Below the pieces are notes generated by a model, which saw only the letters and a list, made by a program, of their open reading frames with translations, was not told where the DNA came from and ran no database searches. The position numbers were made by a program, and so were the translations under genes. From Macrostomum lignano (taxonomy: Eukaryota), in the NCBI GenBank assembly GCA_002269645.1, contig NIVC01000303.1, positions 627,331 to 691,330 of the forward strand: a DNA stretch of 64,000 nucleotides, in the 5' to 3' direction. This document shows, in pieces, positions 1,706-58,990 of this stretch. Each line of letters starts with the position of its first letter. Within the stretch, counting starts at the first letter, position 1.

Positions 1706-31719
<30,014 letters not shown>

Positions 31720-41027: not shown

Positions 41028-43510
<2,483 letters not shown>

Positions 43511-44110
43511 ACTTTTCTTGTTGAATAATTTCCTTTAAATAAAGTACTTCTTGAACTGACTATTACTGAATTGGATTCAGAAAAATGCGCTGCTGTTCTG
43601 ATTGAAGGCCGAAACTTGCTGCCCAAAAACGTTGAGTTAAAAGTTGACAAGAGGTGATTCAAATGGTCTTTACAGCACGGATTCAACCCATAGACGAATC
43701 ATTTTACGCTTATTTGAACTTTTGAATGGCACCAAGGCAGAGCGTCTGTCTTCGTATACCGTAAATCTTTCATTTTTAAATGCTTAATATTGCCAGCAAT
43801 CCTTACATTCGATATTTGATATTAACTGATTAATACCTATATACGTGTTATATTCACCTACTGAATGAATTTCTCACCATCAAGTTCATACAGTACTTGT
43901 TTTATAATTCCTTATTTAAATACTTTTCGTCTCGTTAGCCGTTAAATTTTGTTTTGAAGATTCGTAGAAAAATTGTAGGCGCTCTTTCAAATACCATATT
44001 TTTACAAAACTCGTACTTATACATGTACATCTAAATGCATGTCCCATCCTCTTGAATTATTATTTAATACTTGACATATACTGGCCAAACAAGCTTTTTG
44101 CCTGAGCCAA

Positions 44111-44814
<704 letters not shown>

Positions 44815-45575
44815 ACAATTTAGCCGCGCAATTTTCATCTGTACAGGTCAATCAACAAGTCAAAGGCCACTGTACATACTGGTGAGGGCGTGTGCCTGGA
44901 TACAGTTATCAGTGTGCGTGACTGTACATGGTCATAAGCTAATATGTAGTTTATTCCCTTGTCTTTGTCGCCTCTTCAGGGATGGGTGAAGATTGCTACT
45001 CGTAGTATCTTTTTAAAAGAAGAAAAAAGCACCGCTCCCCTGACTGCTTTTTCGATTGAAAACGACGACGACTTTGACTCGACCAGACCAATGCCAATTG
45101 CATGTATGAAGACGACTCAACGCGCTTCTTCAGCTGGTCTATCTAAGGCCTCAACCTCATTAGCTAGGTTGAGCCGAACTTCTGTCTTTAACTCTGCGAT
45201 CTCATAGCGAAAGTTTCAATTAGCTTTTTCTCGCAAGCTTTTTCGCGTCACATCCTACAAGCGCATATACTGTCTACTTATCATCAGTAGACGAACTCCT
45301 GACACTGCTATCTACGAGCGTAAAACTTTCTATAACTAATAATGACATTAAAGAAAAGAACGGTTGTAGATCACCCTATACGTGTGCTCACACAACTGTA
45401 ATTATTAGTAAACAAACTAATATATTTACAGATTCAGCTTAATAGGTGCCATGCTCAAGACAACACTGGCACACCTTAATTTTGTGGGGGCTTTTTGCTC
45501 TAAACATTACGACACTTTAGCCACACTTTAGCTACACTTGATTAAAAACACTTTGATGTCTGCTTCACTTTGCTT

Positions 45576-45794
45576 TCACTTCTTGCCGTAGCTATATCGG
45601 CGGCGTTGCCCCTTGGCAACAGGTTGAACTTCTTCATCGTAGTCGTCGTCAGCTTCCAGCGGCTCGTCAAGACTTTCGCCGGCGATGTCGTCAAGCGAGT
45701 CGGGCTCTTCCACCTGATCCCACTGGTTGCTGGCTGCCAGCTGGGACACGAGGAACAGGGTCAGCAGCAGAGCGATGCCAAGTTGCATCTTCAT
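45576..45794 (-). CDS. Secreted prepropeptide copy A (signal, acidic pro-region, ...K-GQRRRYSY-GKK)
   Basis: 72 aa; hydrophobic signal; D/E-rich spacer; terminal Gly-Lys-Lys amidation/cleavage signal. Confidence 0.8.
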   Translation of the reverse strand: MKMQLGIALLLTLFLVSQLAASNQWDQVEEPDSLDDIAGESLDEPLEADDDYDEEVQPVAKGQRRRYSYGKK

Positions 45795-46612
45795 GGTTCA
45801 GCTGTGCTTGGTTTTGAAAGGCTTGAATAAATTTTAAACTTTCCTAGTTGAGACAGAGAGGCGCTGCTTCGGGTCAGCTGCTTTTAAAAGCAGCTCTAAA
45901 ACGTGCCATGCAGGGCGCTGTGGGTGCACGTTTTCAATGCAATGCTTTGCGTGGCACAGACTGCGTGCTGCCTTGCCCAAGCTCACCTTAGTTTTTGCTC
46001 CATGCATCTCTTCATCTCTCACTGCTTGCCATAGAGGCTGGACAATGCAGCTACTTGATGAGAATACTGCACGTGCCAGTCTAACAAGATGGGAACCGCA
46101 CACGGCTCACTTGTGGCTCAAAATGAATTAAACTAGCTGGCTACTCAACCTGCATCTTTTATTGCAAATAATTCTCCAAACCCTTAAGTTTGGCCTCTTT
46201 AACACTAGTCGTCTATAGATGCATTCATAAATTTAGGACTCTCACAACTCGCGTGACTGGCTGACAACGTATTTTGTTGTTGTTGATATAGGATTGTCGC
46301 AAGCCCTGGCACCCGCAATTTGCTCGGGGCAGAATTAACAAAATTGCTTCGTTTGTAAAGGAGTAAGTAAGCACTGCACAGTCCTTATACAGTCCACCAC
46401 AATATAACTGCAGAAATTTCTCTGTCACACATTTACTCCCGAACCTAACATAACTCTAACCGCACTCTAACCTAAACCTGAGATGAGATGAGAGGAGAGA
46501 ATAGATAATAGGAGAGAGGAGAGGAGAGGAAAGGAAAGATATGAGATCAGAGTAGAGAAGAGAAAAGATAGAAGACAAGAGAGAGGAGAGAACTTAGAAT
46601 AGACACAAACCT

Positions 46613-46722
46613 TTAGCTGGCCGGATTGCTATTGTGCAGTTTCAAAGGACCCGAGGGCCGAATTGAGAGGCTTCGTGGACCGCATGTGGCCCGAGGCCAG
46701 AGTTTGCTGACCAAGTGCATCA
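46613..46722 (-). mobile_element. hAT/Charlie-like terminal fragment
   Basis: Reverse-complement similarity to 52919-53000 (aagcctctcaat.cggccctcgggtcctt...cacaatagcaatccggcc). Confidence 0.45.
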
Positions 46723-46845
46723 TAAGGTTCATAAAGTAAGATAATCCTGTACTAACTAAATGTTTTTTTTGGACATTAGGTAATAGTCTAGAGGCTATTA
46801 TTAAGGGAGAACTTAATTTCGGACACTCTTCATTTCTGACACTAT

Positions 46846-46950
46846 TCATTTCGGACACTGCTCCGGCTGGCCGCCAGTGGCCACAAGAATTGACTGCACC
46901 ATCAGCAGAGTGAGCAGTAGTGCAATGCCTGTGAGTTGTCGCTCGATCAT
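46846..46950 (-). pseudogene. Signal-peptide-only ORF (34 aa) related to the peptide precursors
   Basis: QLTGIALLLTLLMVQS vs QLGIALLLTLFLVSQ; ends where a triplicated agtgtccgaaat motif begins. Confidence 0.4.
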
Positions 46951-47424
46951 TGCCTCGAATGTCTCATTTTTTTCTGTGAAATATCTTACTACTGAGTCTG
47001 AAATCTGTGGCTCTTTTCGAAAACTCCTATTTAAAGTATGAGAGCCAAAAGACACGGACGGCGGATTTCGAATGACTTCTCCTGATGGTGCAGTTGTGGA
47101 GATGATATACTTACTATGCTATAAAAAGGAGAACTTCAATTGAGAAGGTTTCGATTATTTTGAGATCGCTCCAAGGATCTGGGCGAACTTATTGGTATTC
47201 CCCCTCTCTCTCTCCCTCTTTCTCCTTCTCTCACCATTCTCTCCGTCCCTCTCTCTCTCCCCCTCTCTCTCCTTCTCTCCCTCTCTCTCTCTCCCCCTTC
47301 TCTCCGTCCCCCTTTCTCCCTCCCTCTCTCTCCCTCTCTCTCCCTCTCTCTCTTTCTCTTGGTCTCACTATCTCTCCCTACCCCAAACACCTTCTCTCCC
47401 TATTTTTTATCTTTAAATACTGTC

Positions 47425-48440
47425 TTCCGTCTTCTGGGACCGCGATGGTGACAACAAGAGCGTGGCAACTAGGAAGTACTTTAAGCCCACCGTTAGCCAA
47501 GCCCTCATCCACCGAGGCTCTTTTCATCCTAAGCTCACTTTCTGAAGCGTGGTGAAGTCCCAGCTCCTCAGGTACGCCCGGCGGTGCTACCGGATGGCCG
47601 ACTTCGACGCAGCGTGCACCGGGCTGAAGTCGAATCTGGTGCAGCACCAAGGCTGCCGCCGGCGTTTCCTCCGCACCATCAAGTACGACGTGCTGGCTGA
47701 GCTGGGCTTCTACCCGACCAGACGGTGGGTGATCGGCCGTGCAACCCGGCCGACTCTGCAAGTGCTGCCAGGCGCACGCCAGATTCACCTCGGATCAGCA
47801 GCTCGGATCACCTGGCAGATCAGCTGCCACATCGGTTAAACTCATCATCAGTCAGAGGATCGACTGCAACGCAATGAACGCCGTCTACGTTGTGTTCTGC
47901 CGACGGTGCGATCACACGGTCTATGTCGGCGAGACCGTCAACAGCATCCGTGGTCGTATGCTGGGGCACGACACTGCGAGGCCCCGGTGCTGCAATCCTA
48001 CAGAGACCAAGGGCAGGAGCCTGCGGGAGCTGCTCTGCCAGAGCCGGCTCTGCCGCAGTACACGGTGCCCTTTCACTTTAATGGTATTTTCTCTCTCTCT
48101 CTCTCTCTCTATACTTTGTGACTTGTTCTGTTCCTCTGCCATTGTTTGAACTTGTTTGTCGACTCTGGTGTACGGTGCACCGGAACTCTTTCTACACAAC
48201 ATATATTTTTTATTATTTAACTTATTTGTTTTACTTCTGGTGATGTTCTATCTGGTTAATTATTATTTGACACTTTAATGACTTTTCTATTCATTCTATT
48301 TCATTCTATTACTCATCATACTTCATTGTCGTAAATATTGACGGCAACTGGCTCAAATAAACTTTACTCTACTCGCCCTGACAAAGAGTTTGCCAAATTC
48401 GAAATATCGGCAACAATAATCTTATTGACTTTTGAGCCCT
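47425..48440 (+). mobile_element. 5'-truncated Penelope-like element (RT C-terminus + GIY-YIG), degenerate, with 3' hammerhead relic
   Basis: YFKPTVSQALIHRGSFHPK, VKSQLLRYARRC, NAVYVVFCRRCDHTVYVGET; internal stop and frameshift. Confidence 0.85.
48375..48411 (+). ncRNA. Minimal type-I hammerhead ribozyme motif (G8A variant)
   Basis: gcc-CTGACAA-A-gagttt-gcc-aaattc-GAAA-tat-C-ggc at the 3' end of the Penelope-like fragment. Confidence 0.65.
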
Positions 48441-48814
48441 ATTTTCACCGTGTCAGCGCCTGAGTTTGGAGGTGCCCTCCTTTCCCCCCCTCTCTCTCCC
48501 CCATCTCTCTCTCCCTCCCTATCTCTCTCCCCTATCTCTCTACCCCATTCCCCTATCTCTCTCTTCCTCTCTATCTCTCTCCCCTATCTCTCTCTCCCCC
48601 ATCTCTCTCTTCCTCCCTATCTCTCTCCCCTATCTCTCTCCCCCATTCCCCAGTCTCTCTCTCCCTCCCTATCTCTTTCCCCTATCTCTGGCTCCCCTAT
48701 CTCTCTCTACCCATTCCACTATCTCTCTCTCCCTCTCTATCTCTCTCCCCTATCTCTCTCTCCCCCATTCCCCTATCTCTCTTTCCCCCATTCCCCCATC
48801 TCTCTCTTCCTCCC

Positions 48815-49545
48815 TAATGCAGCCTGATGCAGCGGGCGCGCAGTCGCAGGTCGACCCGCAGCAGTCGCGGGGACAGAGAGGTGCAGTGCACGCTCTGCTG
48901 GAGGCGCGGTCCGATCAGTACGCGACACCGCCCGGCCGCGGTCGTCTGCCGACGTTTACAGGAGGCTCCAGCCGGCTCCGAGGTCCTCAGAGTGGAGCCC
49001 CGGCTCAGCCACGATAGAAATCTCCTGCAGCGGGACGAGGTCCAGCTGTAGGTCGTGGGCCAGCTGGACAAGGATGGTGCGACGCCAGGGGGCCTTCAGA
49101 GTTCGGCAGTTCATCGTGCCGAGTCTGAGGCGGCCACCTGGTACAGCTGGGCCAAATGAAGGTTGGCCTCGTGGTCCCCAGTGGATCCATAGATGAAGTT
49201 GCAGGGACTGGGGACAACAGGCGCCTGGCCGCGCCACGGAGTCGCCCTCGCCGGTTGCGCTCGCGCCGCCACTCAGTGCGACGTTGCGCGCTGCGCCGAC
49301 CTCTGCGTGTCCCTGCTGTGCTGAGCTTTGCTGCCGCAGCCGAGAGGCGGACGTCCGACCCAACCAAGGTCATCCGCGTCCAATGCCAGGAGTTGTCAGC
49401 ACTATTTGTACTTTCGGGCAAATATAATGGCTCGTCGCGGTTGACGGGCTGGGTGCGAACGATGGAACGCAGTAACACGGCCCCTTGCACCGGCTGTGGC
49501 CCGACGGCACAACAAGTCGCTTGGTGACTCGTACTCGTCACAGAT
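48815..49545 (-). mobile_element. 5' fragment of an RTE-like LINE (5' leader + start of AP endonuclease)
   Basis: LRLGTMNCRTLKAPWRR...LQEISIVAEPGLHSEDLGAGW is homologous to the 57.7-59.0 kb endonuclease. Confidence 0.88.
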
Positions 49546-49596
49546 CTTGAATGACAGAACAGAAATTCACTTTAGTGCCGCCTGAAATTCACTCAC

Positions 49597-49692
49597 CTGC
49601 AGATTTAAATCGCCAACATCGTCGCCTAGAATGGCCGTACCAGCCAGATCTGGCACGCAGTCTCCGATACAGACGGCTTCTTGACCTGGCAT
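49597..49692 (-). other. Duplicated peroxiredoxin exon 1 (orphan or alternative first exon)
   Basis: 96 nt encoding the same MPGQEAVCIGDCVPDLAGTAILGDDVGDLNLQ with intact ATG and cag|gtgagt donor. Confidence 0.85.
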
Positions 49693-50639
49693 ACTTCTGT
49701 TGTTGAATAATTTCCTTTAAATAAAGTACTTCTTGAACTGACTTTGACTGAATTGGATTCAGAAAAATGCGCTGCTGTTCTGCTTTAAGGCCGAAACTTG
49801 CTCAAAACCGTGGAATAAAAAGTTATAACACCTTTTCCGTTCCATTTCCACAAAACTACCATTCCAATTCGGCAAGCGGCATTCAATGTCGAAAAGTAAA
49901 TATTCTATTACGAGCGTTCATTCTCGCTCCTGCATGCAGATTTCCCATTCAATTTTAACACATTTTTGTGCGCTGTTTTTTGTGTACTGTACGAGCCATC
50001 AATCTTGAACAGATCCCCTGTCAAGCTAACGACAAGTACTGTAACTCTCTGTGGTTTTCTATAGCATCCCCCTTTCAACAGAGTGCTCTCGGTGAAGTTC
50101 GCTTCTAGAACACAGAAGCTTAATGTACGGGAGCATGCACTGAATATATTGTTGAAGAAATATCACAAATAGAATAAGAATGAGCGACGAGGAGATGTTC
50201 GAAGAAGCAGGAGATGAAGAAGAAAAAATCGGTGAGGAAGACGATGAGGTTAAACCCTGGGGGCCATATGGACGCGTGTCTGTTTGTGGACAACGTGAAT
50301 TTGTTCACGTTCATCTTTAAGAAGTTTTTAAAGTTTTATAAGAAACTTACAATAGTGACTGTGCGGGGTCAAAAGCCACTGCTCTTCCGATAAAAAACTA
50401 CGAGTTTCCGCTGCCTCGACCAGATCAATACCAATTACATGATGGTGTCGACTCAATGTGCTTCTTAAGCTGGCCTCCTCAAAGGCTAGACCCCACGCCA
50501 CTCCATTAACGAGGTTGAACAGAACTTCTGCATGCGCTCTCTCATGGCGAAATTCCTTTTTCATCAATGCAAGCTTTTCACATTCTATACTTTTTACTAA
50601 TCAATGGCCGAACTTTAAAACGGCTATCTAAACTTTCTA

Positions 50640-51700
50640 TAGCTATAATAAAGACAATAAAGATAAGAACGGTTGTTGATCGCCCTACGTCTGCTCACAC
50701 AACCAATTAGTAAAAAACTAATATATTTAAAGATTCAGTTTAATAGGTGCCATGCTCAAGACAACACTGGCACACCTTGATTTTGTGGGGGCTTTTTGCT
50801 CTAAACATTACGACACTTTAGCCACACTTTAGTTGGCATTAGTCTGTAGGGTGTCAGCTTGTAAATAAAAAACTGCTTTCAGTAGCATAAGAGTGTTTCA
50901 CAAAGTTTGATTAAAAACACTTTGATGTCTGCTTCACTTTGCTTTCACTTCTTGCCGTAGCTCAATCGGCGGCGTCGCCACTTGGCAACAGGTTGAACTT
51001 CTTCATCGTAGTCGTCGTCAGCTTCCAGCGGCTCGTCAAGACTTTCGCCGGCGATGTCGTCAAGCGAGTCGGGCTCTTCCACCTGATCCCACTGGTTGCT
51101 GGCTGCCAGCTGGGACACGAGGAACAGGGTCAGCAGCAGAGCGATGCCAAGTTGCATCTTCATGGTTCAGCTGTGCTTGGTTTTGAAAGGCTTGAATAAA
51201 TTTTAAACTTTCCTAGTTGAGACAGAGAGGCGCTGCTTCGGGTCAGCTGCTTTTAAAAGCAGCTCTAAAACGTGCCATGCAGGGCGCTGTGGGTGCACGT
51301 TTTCAATGCAATGCTTTGCGTGGCACAGACTGCGTGCTGCCTTGCCCAAGCTCACCTTAGTTTTTGCTCCATGCATCTCTTCATCTCTCACTGCTTGCCA
51401 TAGAGGCTGGACAATGCAGCTACTTGATGAAGATACTGCACGTGCCAGTCTAACAAGATGGGAACCGCACACGGCTCACTTGTGGCTCAAAATGAATTAA
51501 ACTAGCTGGCTACTCAACCTGCATCTTTTATTGCAAATAATTCTCCAAACCCTTAAGTTTGGGCTCTTAAAGCACGTGTCGTCTAAGACGCTTTCACAAA
51601 CCCAAGGACTGCCGTGAGCCCTGGGCACTGCAATTTGCCTGGGGCAGAGCTTGAAAACATTGCTTCTTTTGTAAAGGAGTAACACTGCACGGTCCTAAGT
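50640..51700 (-). repeat. Segmental duplicate of ~45330-46400 (peptide gene with flanks)
   Basis: Long near-identical alignment visible by eye; a second homologous block is 49445-49800 vs 43265-43625. Confidence 0.92.
50945..51163 (-). CDS. Secreted prepropeptide copy B (...K-WRRRRLSY-GKK)
   Basis: 72 aa; identical to copy A except 4 nt in the last 11 codons. Confidence 0.8.
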   Translation of the reverse strand: MKMQLGIALLLTLFLVSQLAASNQWDQVEEPDSLDDIAGESLDEPLEADDDYDEEVQPVAKWRRRRLSYGKK

Positions 51701-52918
51701 TCCAACCTCTACCAGGTCAAATGTTTCAGTTGTCTCTTATTCTTCCGTCTCTCTATTAGACGATGATGGTACCAATCGTATATGCTTCTAATCAATTAAA
51801 TAAGCCGAAGGTTCGATATGTTTCTCTCGATCTTTAACCCTCAACACGGAGGTTTATTTCTAATTCCTGATGATTGCAATTTCAAATAGATATTAAGCAT
51901 GCAAGTGTATTAAGCAATTCAGTGAAAATGAGATCTGGGCTGGATTCAAAGGAATAGGTTTCCTTGTCTCCTCGATCCTCTCTCCCTATCTCTGTCTCCC
52001 CCTCTCTCTCCCTCTCTCTTCCCCTGTCTCTCTCCCCCCGTCTCTCTACCCCTCCCTCCCCTATTTCTCTCTCCTCTCCTTCCCCCCTCTCTCTGCATAT
52101 CTCCCTCGATATCTCTGTCTCCCCCTCTCTCTCCCCCTCTCTCAATCTCTCTTCCCTCTCTCCCTCTCTCTACCCCTCTCTCACTCTTTCTCACCCTCTC
52201 TTCCTCTCTCTCTGTCTCCCGTCTCAGCATTTCTTTCCCTAAACCGCGAGGAAAGGATCGAGGCAAGACAAGGGGTGGCACGAAACGGAACCTCTGGGCC
52301 AAACAAAGCCTGCAGATGGATTTATTTCTTGCGAAAGATTCAATAGTCGAATGAAAGTGAGAAAAAAATCTGAGCAAACTGTGGTAGTGGCTGCTAGCTA
52401 GAGCTAGCGTTGTTGCACTTTACCCAATCATATCCTTGTTATGTCTATGGTTCTTAAGCTTTCGTTCTCAGCCTCCCACTTATTTTATAATTTTCTATGC
52501 TTGAATAAACTCTGCCGACAGCTTCGTTCAAACTACGACACAAACAAGAACCCATAGGCGTACAAGCGGAGACCAGACTAAATACGAGCTAGCACCCGCG
52601 CACGCGCACCCCGAGCCCCCGCAGCACACGCTACCCCGCACGCACCCGCCCCAGCCAAGCGAGCCACCTCACCCCGCAGTTTAAACGCCCTTACCACCAA
52701 CCCAGTGGCAAGGGTAACATAACTGTCTGTGCTACAGGGTCACCTGAAATGCCCTAGAATTGTTTTGAGGGCTAAGAGCTCTAGCAAAATAATTTCGAGT
52801 AGTGAGCTACTGTGGTGCCATCTCAATGAGTTTCATTGAGTTTGAGTTTGAATGAGTTTCTCATTCTAAGAAAACTATTTTTAAGCTACCAAAACTGTTG
52901 AGCTCGTACGCTCTACAC

Positions 52919-56114: not shown

Positions 56115-57700
56115 TCAGATGGCGCGCTTCAAAGCTTGGGCGCGAACAAAAGCCGCACCGCCGGCAGAGTCCGGGGCGCCGGCGTCAGCCAGCAGACAGT
56201 CGACGTAGCGCCGAGACTTCGCCTGTCCCCGCCGGTAGGGTGCCTGCAACGTAAGTAGCAGCACCTCCTGCACCGGCTCCGGACAGTAGGCCTCGGCGCG
56301 GATGACGTGGCCTGCCAGCTGGAGTCGCCGACGGCGCAGCAGATCGCTAGGACGGGCCAGGCCGGCGCGATGATAGAGCGCCGTGTTGGTGACTCGCTCG
56401 TTGCCGATCTTGAAGGCGGCGCGCAGCAGGCCAGCGTGCGCCGCGTCGACTTGAGCCTCGAGCGAGTCTGTCAGCGTCCAGGTCTCGGCGTTGTATAACA
56501 GGACGGTCTCGATCACCGCCTGGAACAGCGCCGCCCTCTGGCGGTCCGGTAGGGCCTCGGACTGCAGGACTGACCTTATAGAACGAAAGGCAGCCCAAGC
56601 AAGTCCTCGGCGACGCCGCAGATCCTCGCGGACGTCGGGAACCAGACCGCCGAGGTAGACGAACTGCTGACATCTTGGAAGCTCACTCGCCTGTCCGTCA
56701 GCGCCTCGGCAGAAGATTGCAGCCTCGGTGTCGTCCGGCACGCATAGCACGACGGTCTTCTGCGTGTTGACCACCAGGCCGACGCTCGCCGCAACGGCAA
56801 CCAGCCTATCTAGCTGTCGTTGGGCGCCCTCGACGGTCGAGGACAGCAGGGCGAGGTCATCGGCGTAGCCAAGCACGCTGAGCCGTCTCTCCGGTTGGCG
56901 TCGACCCACGCGTCGCCGCAGCAGGAAGCCGTCGTCGTTGGAAGGCAGAGCAGTCCGTAGCACCCAGTCAAGCACCAGAATAAATAGGAACGGCGCTAGC
57001 GTATCTCCCTGGAGCACCCCGGAGGATGTCTCGAAGAAATCCGATAGGCCGTCCGGTGTTGAGACAGCAGCCGTCGTGCCGTGGTACAGCGCCATGACAG
57101 CAGAAATCAGCAGCTCTGGCACGTTGTACGCACGGAGCACCTCTGGGAGCGCGTCCCTCACGACCGAGTCGAAAGCCTTCCTGAAATCGACGAAGATCAG
57201 GATCAGGGTCAACTGGCGGATGCGCGCCTCCTCGATGACTCGTCGAAGAGCCAGGATCTGCGTCACTGTGCCGCGATGGGGCCGGAATCCGTTCTGCTCA
57301 GGTCGCAGGTACGGGTCCAGCACAGGCTGTAACCGCGATAGCAGCATGCGGTTGAACAGCTTCGCGGCGCAGGACTGTAGGCAGATGCCTCGATGCTCCT
57401 CGAGCTTGGTGGTGCCCGGCTTCTTTGGAATGGCGACGATGTGCGCCGTGGTCCATTCGTTTGGCGCCACCTCACCGAAAAGCACGCGGTTCATCACTCT
57501 GGCGACCTCAGTGGCCACGCAGTGGATCCGCAGCGCCTCGGTGGGCACCTCGTCCGGACCAAGCGCTTTGCCGCCCGGCGACTGCCGAGCGAACTTCACA
57601 ACGTCGGCTGTGCTGACTGGGGCAACATTGAAGCTCTCCTCCGCCGGCAACGGCGTCTCCGGCGGCAGCCTCAGATTTTCTGGAAGCGGAGGGGCGGCGC
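56115..57700 (-). CDS. LINE reverse transcriptase domain
   Basis: RT motifs as listed for the element; stop at 56115. Confidence 0.93.
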
Positions 57701-58990
57701 GTTGACAATGGCGGCGAAGAACTCGCGCAGCTCGTTCCTGCGCTCATCCGGAGTGTCGCCTGCCAGGTTGAGCGCGATGCGCCGCTTTCGCCCCGTCAGA
57801 GTGTTGATGGCGGACCAGGCCAAGCGCCCTCTGGCATCGGGCCCTGCGGCAGAGACGGCTTGGATGGCGTCATCGACAGCGGACTGCTGCCGCTGCAGGT
57901 AGACAGCCGCCAGAGCCTCCTCCGCCTCGCGAGTTGGCCGCCCACTCAGTCGGAGCCTCTCCAGATCTTCCCTCGCTTCGTCGATCGCGGGGTCGTCCTG
58001 CCAGACCGGCTGCCCGCGCTGGGCCGGTCGCATCAGCGGGACTGCTTGCTCCGCAGCGGCTCGAACTGCAGCGCTCACCTCCGCGTACTCGGCTCCTCCA
58101 CGCTTGTCGCCCAGCGCAGTGACAAAGGCACCGGCAAAGCGACGTCGCGTCTCGGCGTCCCTGAGCGCGCGGTAGTAGCGCCGCGGTGGCCGCTTTGGCG
58201 GACGGTAGAGCGGGTCCCGAAGCCGAAGGTCGCAGATGAGCAGCCGATGGTCGGACCGCAGAGCCAGCGGCGTAATGGTGTGGCAGTTGGTGACGCGGCG
58301 GCGCTCACGAAAGCGCACAAGCACGTGGTCGAGCTGTGCCAGCCTCCGCGTAGCGTTCCGGCCGCGCGCGTTCCGCCGCCTCCGCTTGCAGCCCACGAAG
58401 GTCGCGAGCCTGCCCGGTGACTTGCGGAATCTGGTGTTGGCCGACACCATGTCCTGTCTCTCCAGGAAGTCCTCTAGCGCTCCGGTGTTGCCGTTCTCGC
58501 GCGCTGTCACAAACAGCGATCGCTCGGACCTACGCAGAACTGCGTTCAGGTCTCCGAGAATGACCACTGTGTCACGTTGCGCCATCTCCTCCACCCGCAC
58601 CGAGAGTTGCTCGAAGAAGGCCTGAGCCTCATCGGAGCGGGTAGCAGGCGGCGCATACGCGCAGAACAGGCGGGTGTTCCGGCCGCGAAGCCGGACGTCG
58701 ACCCGAAGCAGCCGAGAAGACAGGGAGATGCAGCGACAGCTCTGCTGCAGCCTCGGTCCGATCAGCGCTCCAACTCCTCCACGGCCTCGCTCATCCGCTG
58801 AGGTGTACCAGAGTGTCCAACCGGCGCCCAGGTCCTCACAGTGAAGTCCGGGGTCGGCTCTGATAGACACCTCCTGTAGTGCGATGACATCACAGCTGAG
58901 GTCGAGCGCTAGCCTCGCCAGCAGCCCTCTCCGCCATGTGGCCTTGAGAGTGCGGCAGTTCAGCGTCCCGACCCGAAGCGTGCCTCTGGT
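57671..58990 (-). CDS. LINE apurinic-like endonuclease domain
   Basis: Open frame from TLRVGTLNC to the frameshift near 57700. Confidence 0.92.
   Translation of the reverse strand, partial: TRGTLRVGTLNCRTLKATWRRGLLARLALDLSCDVIALQEVSIRADPGLHCEDLGAGWTLWYTSADERGRGGVGALIGPRLQQSCRCISLSSRLLRVDVRLRGRNTRLFCAYAPPATRSDEAQAFFEQLSVRVEEMAQRDTVVILGDLNAVLRRSERSLFVTARENGNTGALEDFLERQDMVSANTRFRKSPGRLATFVGCKRRRRNARGRNATRRLAQLDHVLVRFRERRRVTNCHTITPLALRSDHRLLICDLRLRDPLYRPPKRPPRRYYRALRDAETRRRFAGAFVTALGDKRGGAEYAEVSAAVRAAAEQAVPLMRPAQRGQPVWQDDPAIDEAREDLERLRLSGRPTREAEEALAAVYLQRQQSAVDDAIQAVSAAGPDARGRLAWSAINTLTGRKRRIALNLAGDTPDERRNELREFFAAIVNAPPLRFQKI

Follow-up and report, generated by a model that had tools for sequence, protein, structure and literature searches.

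Introduction

In the precursors of amphibian skin peptides and of conotoxins, a conserved signal peptide and acidic propiece are followed by a hypervariable C-terminal peptide; in ordinary neuropeptide precursors, the peptide is the conserved part. The prohormones of flatworms have been sought among proteins of under 200 amino acids (aa) that have a signal peptide and basic cleavage sites (Collins et al., 2010, PMC2953531), and a small negatively charged releasing factor has been predicted for the duo-gland adhesive organ of Macrostomum lignano (Wunderer et al., 2019, PMC6410801). Here, we describe two tandem genes on a 64,000-nucleotide stretch of M. lignano DNA, which is called the window below (assembly Mlig_3_7, GCA_002269645.1, contig NIVC01000303.1). 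We rate their product as a predicted, taxon-restricted secretory peptide precursor, whose genes carry a short coding island that appears resistant to gene conversion. The reading that we favor, although with no better than even confidence, is that of a lineage-specific secretory prepropeptide of about 72 aa, which would be cut at Arg-Arg-Arg (RRR) to give a conserved acidic peptide and a variable C-terminal peptide.

The tandem gene pair

The two copies are small single-exon genes, neighbors in tandem, each with an intact open reading frame (ORF) of 72 codons plus stop (Table 1). The protein of copy 1 ends in VAKGQRRRYSYGKK (in a longer listing, EEVQPVAKGQRRRYSYGKK) and that of copy 2 in VAKWRRRRLSYGKK (longer, EEVQPVAKWRRRRLSYGKK). 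The locus (L001, the reverse complement of window positions 40945-61163) is represented in the databases by M. lignano hypothetical proteins only, which belong to the gene group Mlig015496, and the copy 2 protein represents cluster P0001. The minus-strand frame is supported by the silent differences within the family, every one of which is found at a third codon position. For this reason the antisense ORFs (45570-45830 and 50939-51199, plus strand) were rejected as real genes; in addition, it is the minus-strand protein that is conserved in the second subfamily described below.

A preliminary description, made from the sequence alone, had noted two 72-codon precursors with four nucleotide differences, all of them in the last 11 codons, and the ORFs and their alignment match it exactly. 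The differences (45611, 45607, 45595 and 45594 in copy 1; 50980, 50976, 50964 and 50963 in copy 2) are confined to codons 62-67 and all change residues, namely, GGG>TGG (G62W), CAA>CGA (Q63R) and TAT>TTG (Y67L) from copy 1 to copy 2. By base-by-base alignment, the copies share a near-identical core of 656 bp (45538-46193 vs. 50907-51562) with six differences in total, and the only core differences outside the coding sequence (CDS) are an adjacent dinucleotide at 46062/3, upstream. If differences are placed at random in simulation, at least four of the six core differences come to lie within 18 bp with a probability of about 9e-4, and all four CDS differences with one of about 1.4e-3. However, the clustering in the window pair alone loses its significance when each run of adjacent changes is taken as one multi-nucleotide event, and these tight clusters could represent two or three such events. 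Over the whole family, the tails account for 15% of the coding length but for at least 6 of 13 conservatively counted events (P=0.007). CpG decay is an unlikely cause of the hot spot, since the changes are mostly transversions.

The preliminary description had also considered that the differences might be sequencing errors or alleles. Both are rejected, since the two variants occur on one contig and recur on independent contigs, with the same pair on L002 and copy 2 on L003.

A family with two subfamilies

The contig NIVC01003287.1 (L002), which is collinear with the window and about 98-99.8% identical to it, has the same tandem pair; copy 2 is also found on a third contig (L003), which stops short of the place of copy 1. 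For this neopolyploid assembly, three copies that diverge by about 2% are usual (PMC10733133). Copy 1 is identical between the window and L002, and copy 2 in both L002 and L003 encodes the same protein (WRRRRLSY) with three synonymous differences, two of which are inside the tail. The earlier statement that the paralogs differ only by non-synonymous changes is consequently true of the window pair and not of the family. A second locus (locus II) is represented by L004 (NIVC01000200.1) and L005 (NIVC01000677.1), which are 88-95% identical to the window around copy 2. Its tails are WRRRRYSSGKK and WGRRRRYSSGKK (that is, WRRRRYSS and WGRRRRYSS), and in its acidic part DD is replaced by KE.

All these genes form subfamily A. 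A full HMMER profile search against 1.84 billion representative proteins revealed subfamily B (Mlig003877), which is 40% identical to subfamily A and present on three contigs (L006-L008). The tail is 12 residues long in both subfamilies, and reads K-xx-RRR-xxx-GKK in subfamily A and R-xx-RRR-TFN-KKK in subfamily B. The variable pair before RRR is GQ, WR or WG+R in the former, and VA or LG in the latter; the Gly required for amidation is present in all copies of subfamily A and in none of subfamily B, which ends in Asn-Lys-Lys-Lys. At least six tail variants are present in the assembly, and the ORF is intact in all of the 10 CDS copies examined across both subfamilies. The features conserved between the subfamilies are the signal peptide, Q-x-D..VE-x-PD, the block LDDIAGxSLxEPLExD, VA[KR], RRR and the terminal KK, and within the tail only non-basic positions vary between them. 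The acidic block is the best conserved part and the putative mature peptide the least conserved one.

No relatives outside M. lignano were found among about 5.8 billion proteins by word-indexed search, nor among the 1.84 billion representatives by HMMER profile. The precursors have no Pfam match at E<=10, a profile search of PDB gave no relative of them, and literature searches with "SYamide"-type terms returned no relevant paper. Membership in a known neuropeptide or other protein family was rejected, as the Pfam, protein, profile and PDB searches gave only the two subfamilies of M. lignano. The bilaterian families RYamide/luqin, NPY/NPF and sulfakinin were rejected as well, because no profile matches and the tail is the least conserved region. 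The family is thus, as far as these searches reach, an orphan restricted to M. lignano and a member of no described family. The preliminary view of an undescribed family and of no known neuropeptide is borne out, the entries being hypothetical proteins that lack a Pfam, PDB or cross-species homologue.

The absence of homologues outside M. lignano also favors another explanation, that is, young lineage-specific ORFs with little or no function, whose tail differences are neutral multi-nucleotide events or leftovers of patchy conversion. The predicted disorder of the polypeptide agrees with it, as do the tight clusters of changes at 46062/3 and 45594/5, the change GAC GAC>AAA GAA and, in each of the two subfamilies, a pair of changes at a distance of 4 nt. 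We regard this explanation as improbable, because all 10 CDS copies are intact over a divergence down to 40% identity, with the signal, motif, basic residues and length kept, because recent copies differ more by silent than by replacement changes over the signal and acidic parts, and because transcript-based gene models exist. These Mlig gene models derive from a genome-guided RNA-seq transcriptome (PMC5730564), so transcription of the genes is likely; the model of subfamily B includes translated 5' untranslated region (5'UTR), as expected of a transcript-derived ORF.

The sole non-coding similarity between the subfamilies is an 11-nt identity, CAGCGCCTCTC, in the presumed 5'UTRs (window 45856-45866, minus strand; L006 about 10022-10032; E=0.07), which is located at about -72 from the ATG in subfamily A and about -39 in subfamily B.

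Gene conversion and the island

Outside the core, copy 2 is close to the locus II genes (88-98% identity) and far from copy 1 (49-67%), so copy 2 and the locus II genes are positional counterparts. L005 has kept the copy-1-specific upstream flank together with the first 149 bp of the copy-1 unit, and therefore the duplication into copy 1 and copy 2 is older than the split of locus I from locus II. Despite this old duplication, the cores of copy 1 and copy 2 are 97.9% identical, compared with about 94% between orthologous copy 2 genes, which is a signature of gene conversion. The distal 3'UTR of copy 2 in the window (50712-50832) is copy-1-like, whereas its counterparts in L002 and L003 are locus-II-like there; consequently, the conversion is recent, patchy and haplotype-specific. 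At codons 62-63, copy 2 still reads as its positional counterparts do (TGG CGx), although both flanks are homogenized, which indicates an island that escaped homogenization.

Judging from these alignments, the tandem copies are old duplicates held near-identical by gene conversion, except for an island of 24 nt. A recent duplication was rejected as the cause of the near-identity in view of the L005 remnant, the core identities and the distal 3'UTR. The escape of the island could be due to selection for different tails, or to a lack of constraint on the non-basic residues.

In locus II, the place that copy 1 would occupy is broken up: in L005 the flank and the 149 bp (13638-14219) are followed by a AAACCTGACTGGGAT-type satellite, and in L004 an expanded satellite with a period of about 37 bp extends from 17539 onward, up to the end of the DNA examined. 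In the window, about 1.1 kb upstream of copy 1, there is a short ORF (46846-46950, minus strand; MIERQLTGIALLLTLLMVQSILVATGGQPEQCPK, then stop), whose hydrophobic GIALLLTL resembles the signal peptide of the precursors (tblastn E=0.17). It may be the relic of a further copy, or a chance resemblance.

Variation in the tail

Among the seven subfamily-A copies, the island contains six substitution columns and one codon indel, and is surrounded by 30 invariant nt before it and 50 after it (GKK, stop and the first 38 nt of the 3'UTR). It is more variable than the adjacent upstream 450 bp (6/24 vs. 33/430, P about 0.005), and among the recently diverged subgenome copies the tail has 4 substitutions in 132 nt compared with 3 in 750 nt for the rest of the CDS (P=0.012). 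In subfamily B, the copies have only two residue differences (VA vs. LG), both in the pair before RRR, and the other two CDS differences are silent.

The basic residues of the tail behave differently from the others. K/R61, R64-66 and K71-72 are invariant in 6 of 6 distinct proteins, and G70 is invariant in subfamily A. All tail replacements are located at non-basic positions, for which the chance is (5/11)^6, about 0.009; such invariance fits a role of the basic residues as processing sites or in charge. In two independent comparisons, the non-basic tail sites have more replacements than expected from the local neutral proxies (Poisson P=0.028 and 0.009), where it should be noted that this class of sites was defined partly after the data were seen. 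By the Nei-Gojobori method, the proportion of non-synonymous differences (pN) is 0.12-0.25 in the tail vs. 0-0.03 in the signal and acidic parts.

These comparisons suggest diversifying selection on the island. On the other hand, the proportion of synonymous differences (pS) in the tail is anywhere between 0 and 0.34, with about 6 synonymous sites behind it, and these counts do not establish an omega above 1. For the copy-2-type genes, the island (4/24) is not above the fastest neutral proxy (58/428); the island is also where synonymous changes accumulate, and multi-nucleotide events inflate its substitution counts. Multi-nucleotide mutation and patchy gene conversion are live alternatives to selection on the tail. 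The non-basic tail residues are either unconstrained or positively selected. What stands of a "diversifying" family is the hypervariable tail; the selective part of that claim is no more than suggested, given the tail pS and the copy-2-type island.

Proposed processing and product

The N-terminus is hydrophobic at residues 5-21, with small residues at -3/-1 (AAS-N and VTG-E, cut at the hyphen) in the same column of the alignment between the subfamilies. AlphaFold2 predicts a helix at residues 4-23 and coil elsewhere, at low confidence (predicted local distance difference test 62.5). A signal sequence is thus indicated by hydrophobicity, by the AlphaFold2 helix and by the -3/-1 residues. Together with the invariant basic residues and the kept tail length, it fits a secretory propeptide processed by a convertase.

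We infer secretion, cleavage sites, amidation and the identity of the active product from the sequences as follows. The signal peptide would be removed after about residue 22, and the remaining propeptide of 50 aa would be cut after the invariant Arg-Arg-Arg by a subtilisin-like proprotein convertase; a carboxypeptidase would then trim the basic residues and, in subfamily A, the exposed Gly would be converted to a C-terminal amide. Two products are predicted. The first, of about 40 aa, would be polyanionic and conserved, have a net charge of about -14 to -17, and carry the variable pair as its last residues. The second would be a very small variable C-terminal peptide, that is, YSY-NH2, LSY-NH2 or YSS-NH2 in subfamily A and non-amidated TFN in subfamily B.

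By the usual convertase rules, cleavage after RR or RRR is favored, and monobasic cleavage is helped by a basic residue at -4, -6 or -8. There is none at these positions before K61, and a monobasic cut there is therefore disfavored. Of the two products suggested in the preliminary description, YSY/LSY-amide released by RRR cleavage is accordingly the one preferred under these rules, and the octapeptide with an uncut RRR is less likely. The amidated peptide family suggested there is weakened, as amidation would be confined to subfamily A, in which Gly-Lys-Lys is invariant, and would not extend to subfamily B.

The octapeptide was the leading idea of the preliminary description. In this view, the tail would escape cleavage at RRR and be set free whole, as a cationic amidated peptide of eight or nine residues (GQRRRYSY-NH2, WRRRRLSY-NH2, W(G)RRRRYSS-NH2) that the acidic propiece masks until secretion, with diversifying selection acting on an antimicrobial, toxin-like or seminal "allohormone" effector. 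The layout is that of amphibian skin-peptide and conotoxin precursors, the excess of non-basic replacements agrees with it, and the pair before RRR, variable in both subfamilies, belongs to the peptide only if RRR is not cleaved. However, a monobasic cut after K61 (or R) that lacks basic -4, -6 and -8 residues is needed, and an internal RRR or RRRR would have to survive, both of which are unfavorable by the usual rules. Natural antimicrobial peptides and toxins are also typically longer than eight Cys-free residues, an amidation signal is lacking in subfamily B, and the non-basic class is partly post hoc. We consider the uncut tail peptide rather unlikely, though less so than functionless ORFs.

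The conservation of the acidic block gives more weight to another alternative, in which the polyanionic peptide is the working product, and the tail is a removable cap or processing cassette with neutral spacers at its non-basic residues. The peptide might be the counter-ion of polycationic partners or compete for them, or it might be a polyanion that condenses granules or modulates adhesion. The two subfamilies, with an overall identity of 40%, have LDDIAGxSLxEPLExD nearly intact in common; the acidic piece (-14 to -17) and the tail (+6 to +7) hold their net charges although the tail residues change, and amidation is not conserved across the subfamilies. The neutral-like rate of the copy-2-type island, the synonymous changes within the island, and the predicted releasing factor (Wunderer et al., 2019, PMC6410801) point in the same direction. 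Against it, the island is more variable than the adjacent putative promoter, and the exact tail length and Gly70 are kept in all subfamily-A copies, which suggests more than a spacer. We take it as a serious possibility that is nonetheless clearly less probable than the two-product scheme. A special case, in which the polyanionic peptide of about 40 aa would be the duo-gland releasing factor itself (PMC6410801) and the tail an intramolecular safety catch removed by a convertase at or before secretion, is very improbable; the tail residues would then be free to vary, which would account for the hypervariable island.

The layout of an acidic propiece and a polybasic hypervariable tail stated in the preliminary description is present, and the role of the acidic piece as a mere mask is weakened by its being best conserved. 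For the same reason, in the two-product scheme we weight the importance of the acidic peptide nearly as high as that of the tail peptide. The acidic piece contains EADDDYDEE (window 45636-45656, minus strand, codons 47-53), with a Tyr in strongly acidic surroundings, the type of site used by tyrosylprotein sulfotransferases. Its counterpart at the second locus is EADKEYDEE, and subfamily B lacks it.

Several points weigh against the two-product scheme. On the alignments, the precursors fail the expectation of a conserved peptide held for ordinary neuropeptides, and their most conserved part is what the scheme would treat as a spacer, the acidic block. A tripeptide that differs as YSY, LSY, YSS and TFN, and is amidated in one subfamily only, would be an odd signaling molecule. 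The counts behind diversifying selection are tiny, with tail pS reaching 0.34, and the family census is a lower bound, since for example the genomic copy L002_b is not among the annotated copies. Furthermore, the identifiers Mlig015496 and Mlig003877 were not found in the literature full text or in the supplements searched, and this literature gave no record of expression, localization or peptides for the genes. They are also absent from the supplement text of PMC5977470 on seminal-fluid protein candidates with prostate-limited transcripts (Weber et al., 2018); as this is a brief text with transcript names of an older type, the absence carries little weight.

Features of the locus

The coordinates of both genes and of other features in the window are listed in Table 1. 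The shared upstream region is regarded as a putative promoter. Both gene units are bracketed by CT-rich low-complexity arrays, and the (ACT)n microsatellite nearby is unusually long and pure.

Table 1. Features of the two gene copies and of their surroundings in the window.
Feature	Position in window	Strand	Basis or remark
Copy 1 ORF, 72 codons plus stop	45576-45794	-	
Copy 1 predicted signal peptide, codons 1-22	about 45729-45794	-	ORF and hydrophobic N-terminus
Copy 1 acidic piece, codons 23-60	45615-45728	-	
Copy 1 basic tail K-GQ-RRR-YSY-GKK	45579-45614	-	
Copy 1 stop	45576-45578	-	
Copy 1 hypervariable 24-nt island, codons 62-69	45588-45611	-	7-copy comparison
Copy 1 shared upstream region, putative promoter and 5'UTR	45795-46231	-	97.9% identity to 51164-51600
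TATA-like TTTTAAAA within palindrome	45882-45889 (copy 2: 51251-51258)		upstream of CDS
Copy 1 3' flank	45411-45575	-	first 38 nt identical in all copies
Copy 2 ORF, 72 codons plus stop	50945-51163	-	
Copy 2 predicted signal peptide	51098-51163	-	
Copy 2 acidic piece	50984-51097	-	
Copy 2 basic tail K-WR-RRR-LSY-GKK	50948-50983	-	
Copy 2 hypervariable 24-nt island	50957-50980	-	
Copy 2 shared upstream region	51164-51600	-	
Copy 2 3' flank, about 70 extra bases	about 50833-50906		after the shared 38 nt
121-bp block past the extra bases of copy 2	45411-45531 vs. 50712-50832		97% identity
Spacer between units, outside duplicated unit	46232-50711		CT-rich low-complexity, degraded mobile-element-like ORFs, one arm of 300-bp repeat
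Perfect (ACT)n microsatellite	44111-44814		234.7 copies, 704 bp, 100% matches
CT-rich low-complexity arrays	47189-47380, 48470-48820, 51964-52240		
300-bp dispersed repeat	43299-43598 vs. 49481-49780		97% identity, one arm in spacer
Spacer ORF	47739-48149	+	no Pfam match; by eye, GIY-YIG-like mobile-element remnant
Spacer ORF	49005-49541	-	no Pfam match
Retroelement ORFs	19708-22904, 56115-58870	-	one Ty3/gypsy-type pol, one LINE-like
DnaJ-domain ORF	18346-19326	-	

One of the retroelement ORFs is a Ty3/gypsy-type pol (RVT_1, RNase H, integrase), and the other is similar to a long interspersed nuclear element (LINE), with a reverse transcriptase beside a weak endonuclease match below the Pfam cut-off.

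Comparison with known systems

If the tail peptides are active and diversifying, the family would be a compact case of a hypervariable effector carried by a conserved secretory cassette, in a genetically tractable flatworm with transgenesis and RNA interference, and would bear on sexual conflict or innate defense. Should the product be the acidic piece, this would supply a candidate for a missing component of M. lignano secretion biology. In both cases, the locus shows clearly and on a small scale how conversion can homogenize tandem paralogs and yet leave a coding island of 24 nt distinct, here in a neopolyploid genome that has three subgenome copies (PMC10733133).

Compared with the releasing factor of Wunderer et al. 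(2019, PMC6410801), the acidic piece is from the same species, small, strongly negative and predicted to be secreted; this is a match of properties only, and the factor is not called a peptide in that paper. The likeness to flatworm prohormones (npp/spp; PMC2953531) is broader, as the precursors are short (72-74 aa), have a predicted signal sequence, invariant RRR and terminal KK as basic sites and, in subfamily A, Gly followed by a dibasic end, and as the copies lie in tandem, like npp/spp genes, which often form clustered paralogs. The Gly before the terminal basic residues, the substrate signal of peptidylglycine monooxygenase, is found in all subfamily-A copies (GKK) and in none of subfamily B (NKKK). 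Unlike the npp/spp prohormones, to which they have no sequence relationship, the precursors would yield one terminal peptide of only 3-8 residues, and the predicted peptide is the least, not the most, conserved part.

As in the charge masking of defensin- or cathelicidin-type precursors, one and the same polypeptide has an acidic segment (about -16) followed by a cationic tail (+6 to +7). In contrast to those pairs, the charges are far from balanced and the acidic part is conserved and dominant, so that "mask" may be the wrong word. Compared with preprodermaseptin-type and conotoxin families, the putative mature part is far shorter (at most 8-9 residues), lacks the amphipathic length of an antimicrobial helix as well as a Cys framework, and shows no homology; the genes have no gland or venom context, and positive selection is only suggested. 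However, the arrangement itself is the same, since in this multigene family the signal and the acidic propiece are near-invariant among paralogs, and the substitutions are concentrated C-terminally, after a basic processing site, so that a conserved prepro-region is joined to a hypervariable putative mature region.

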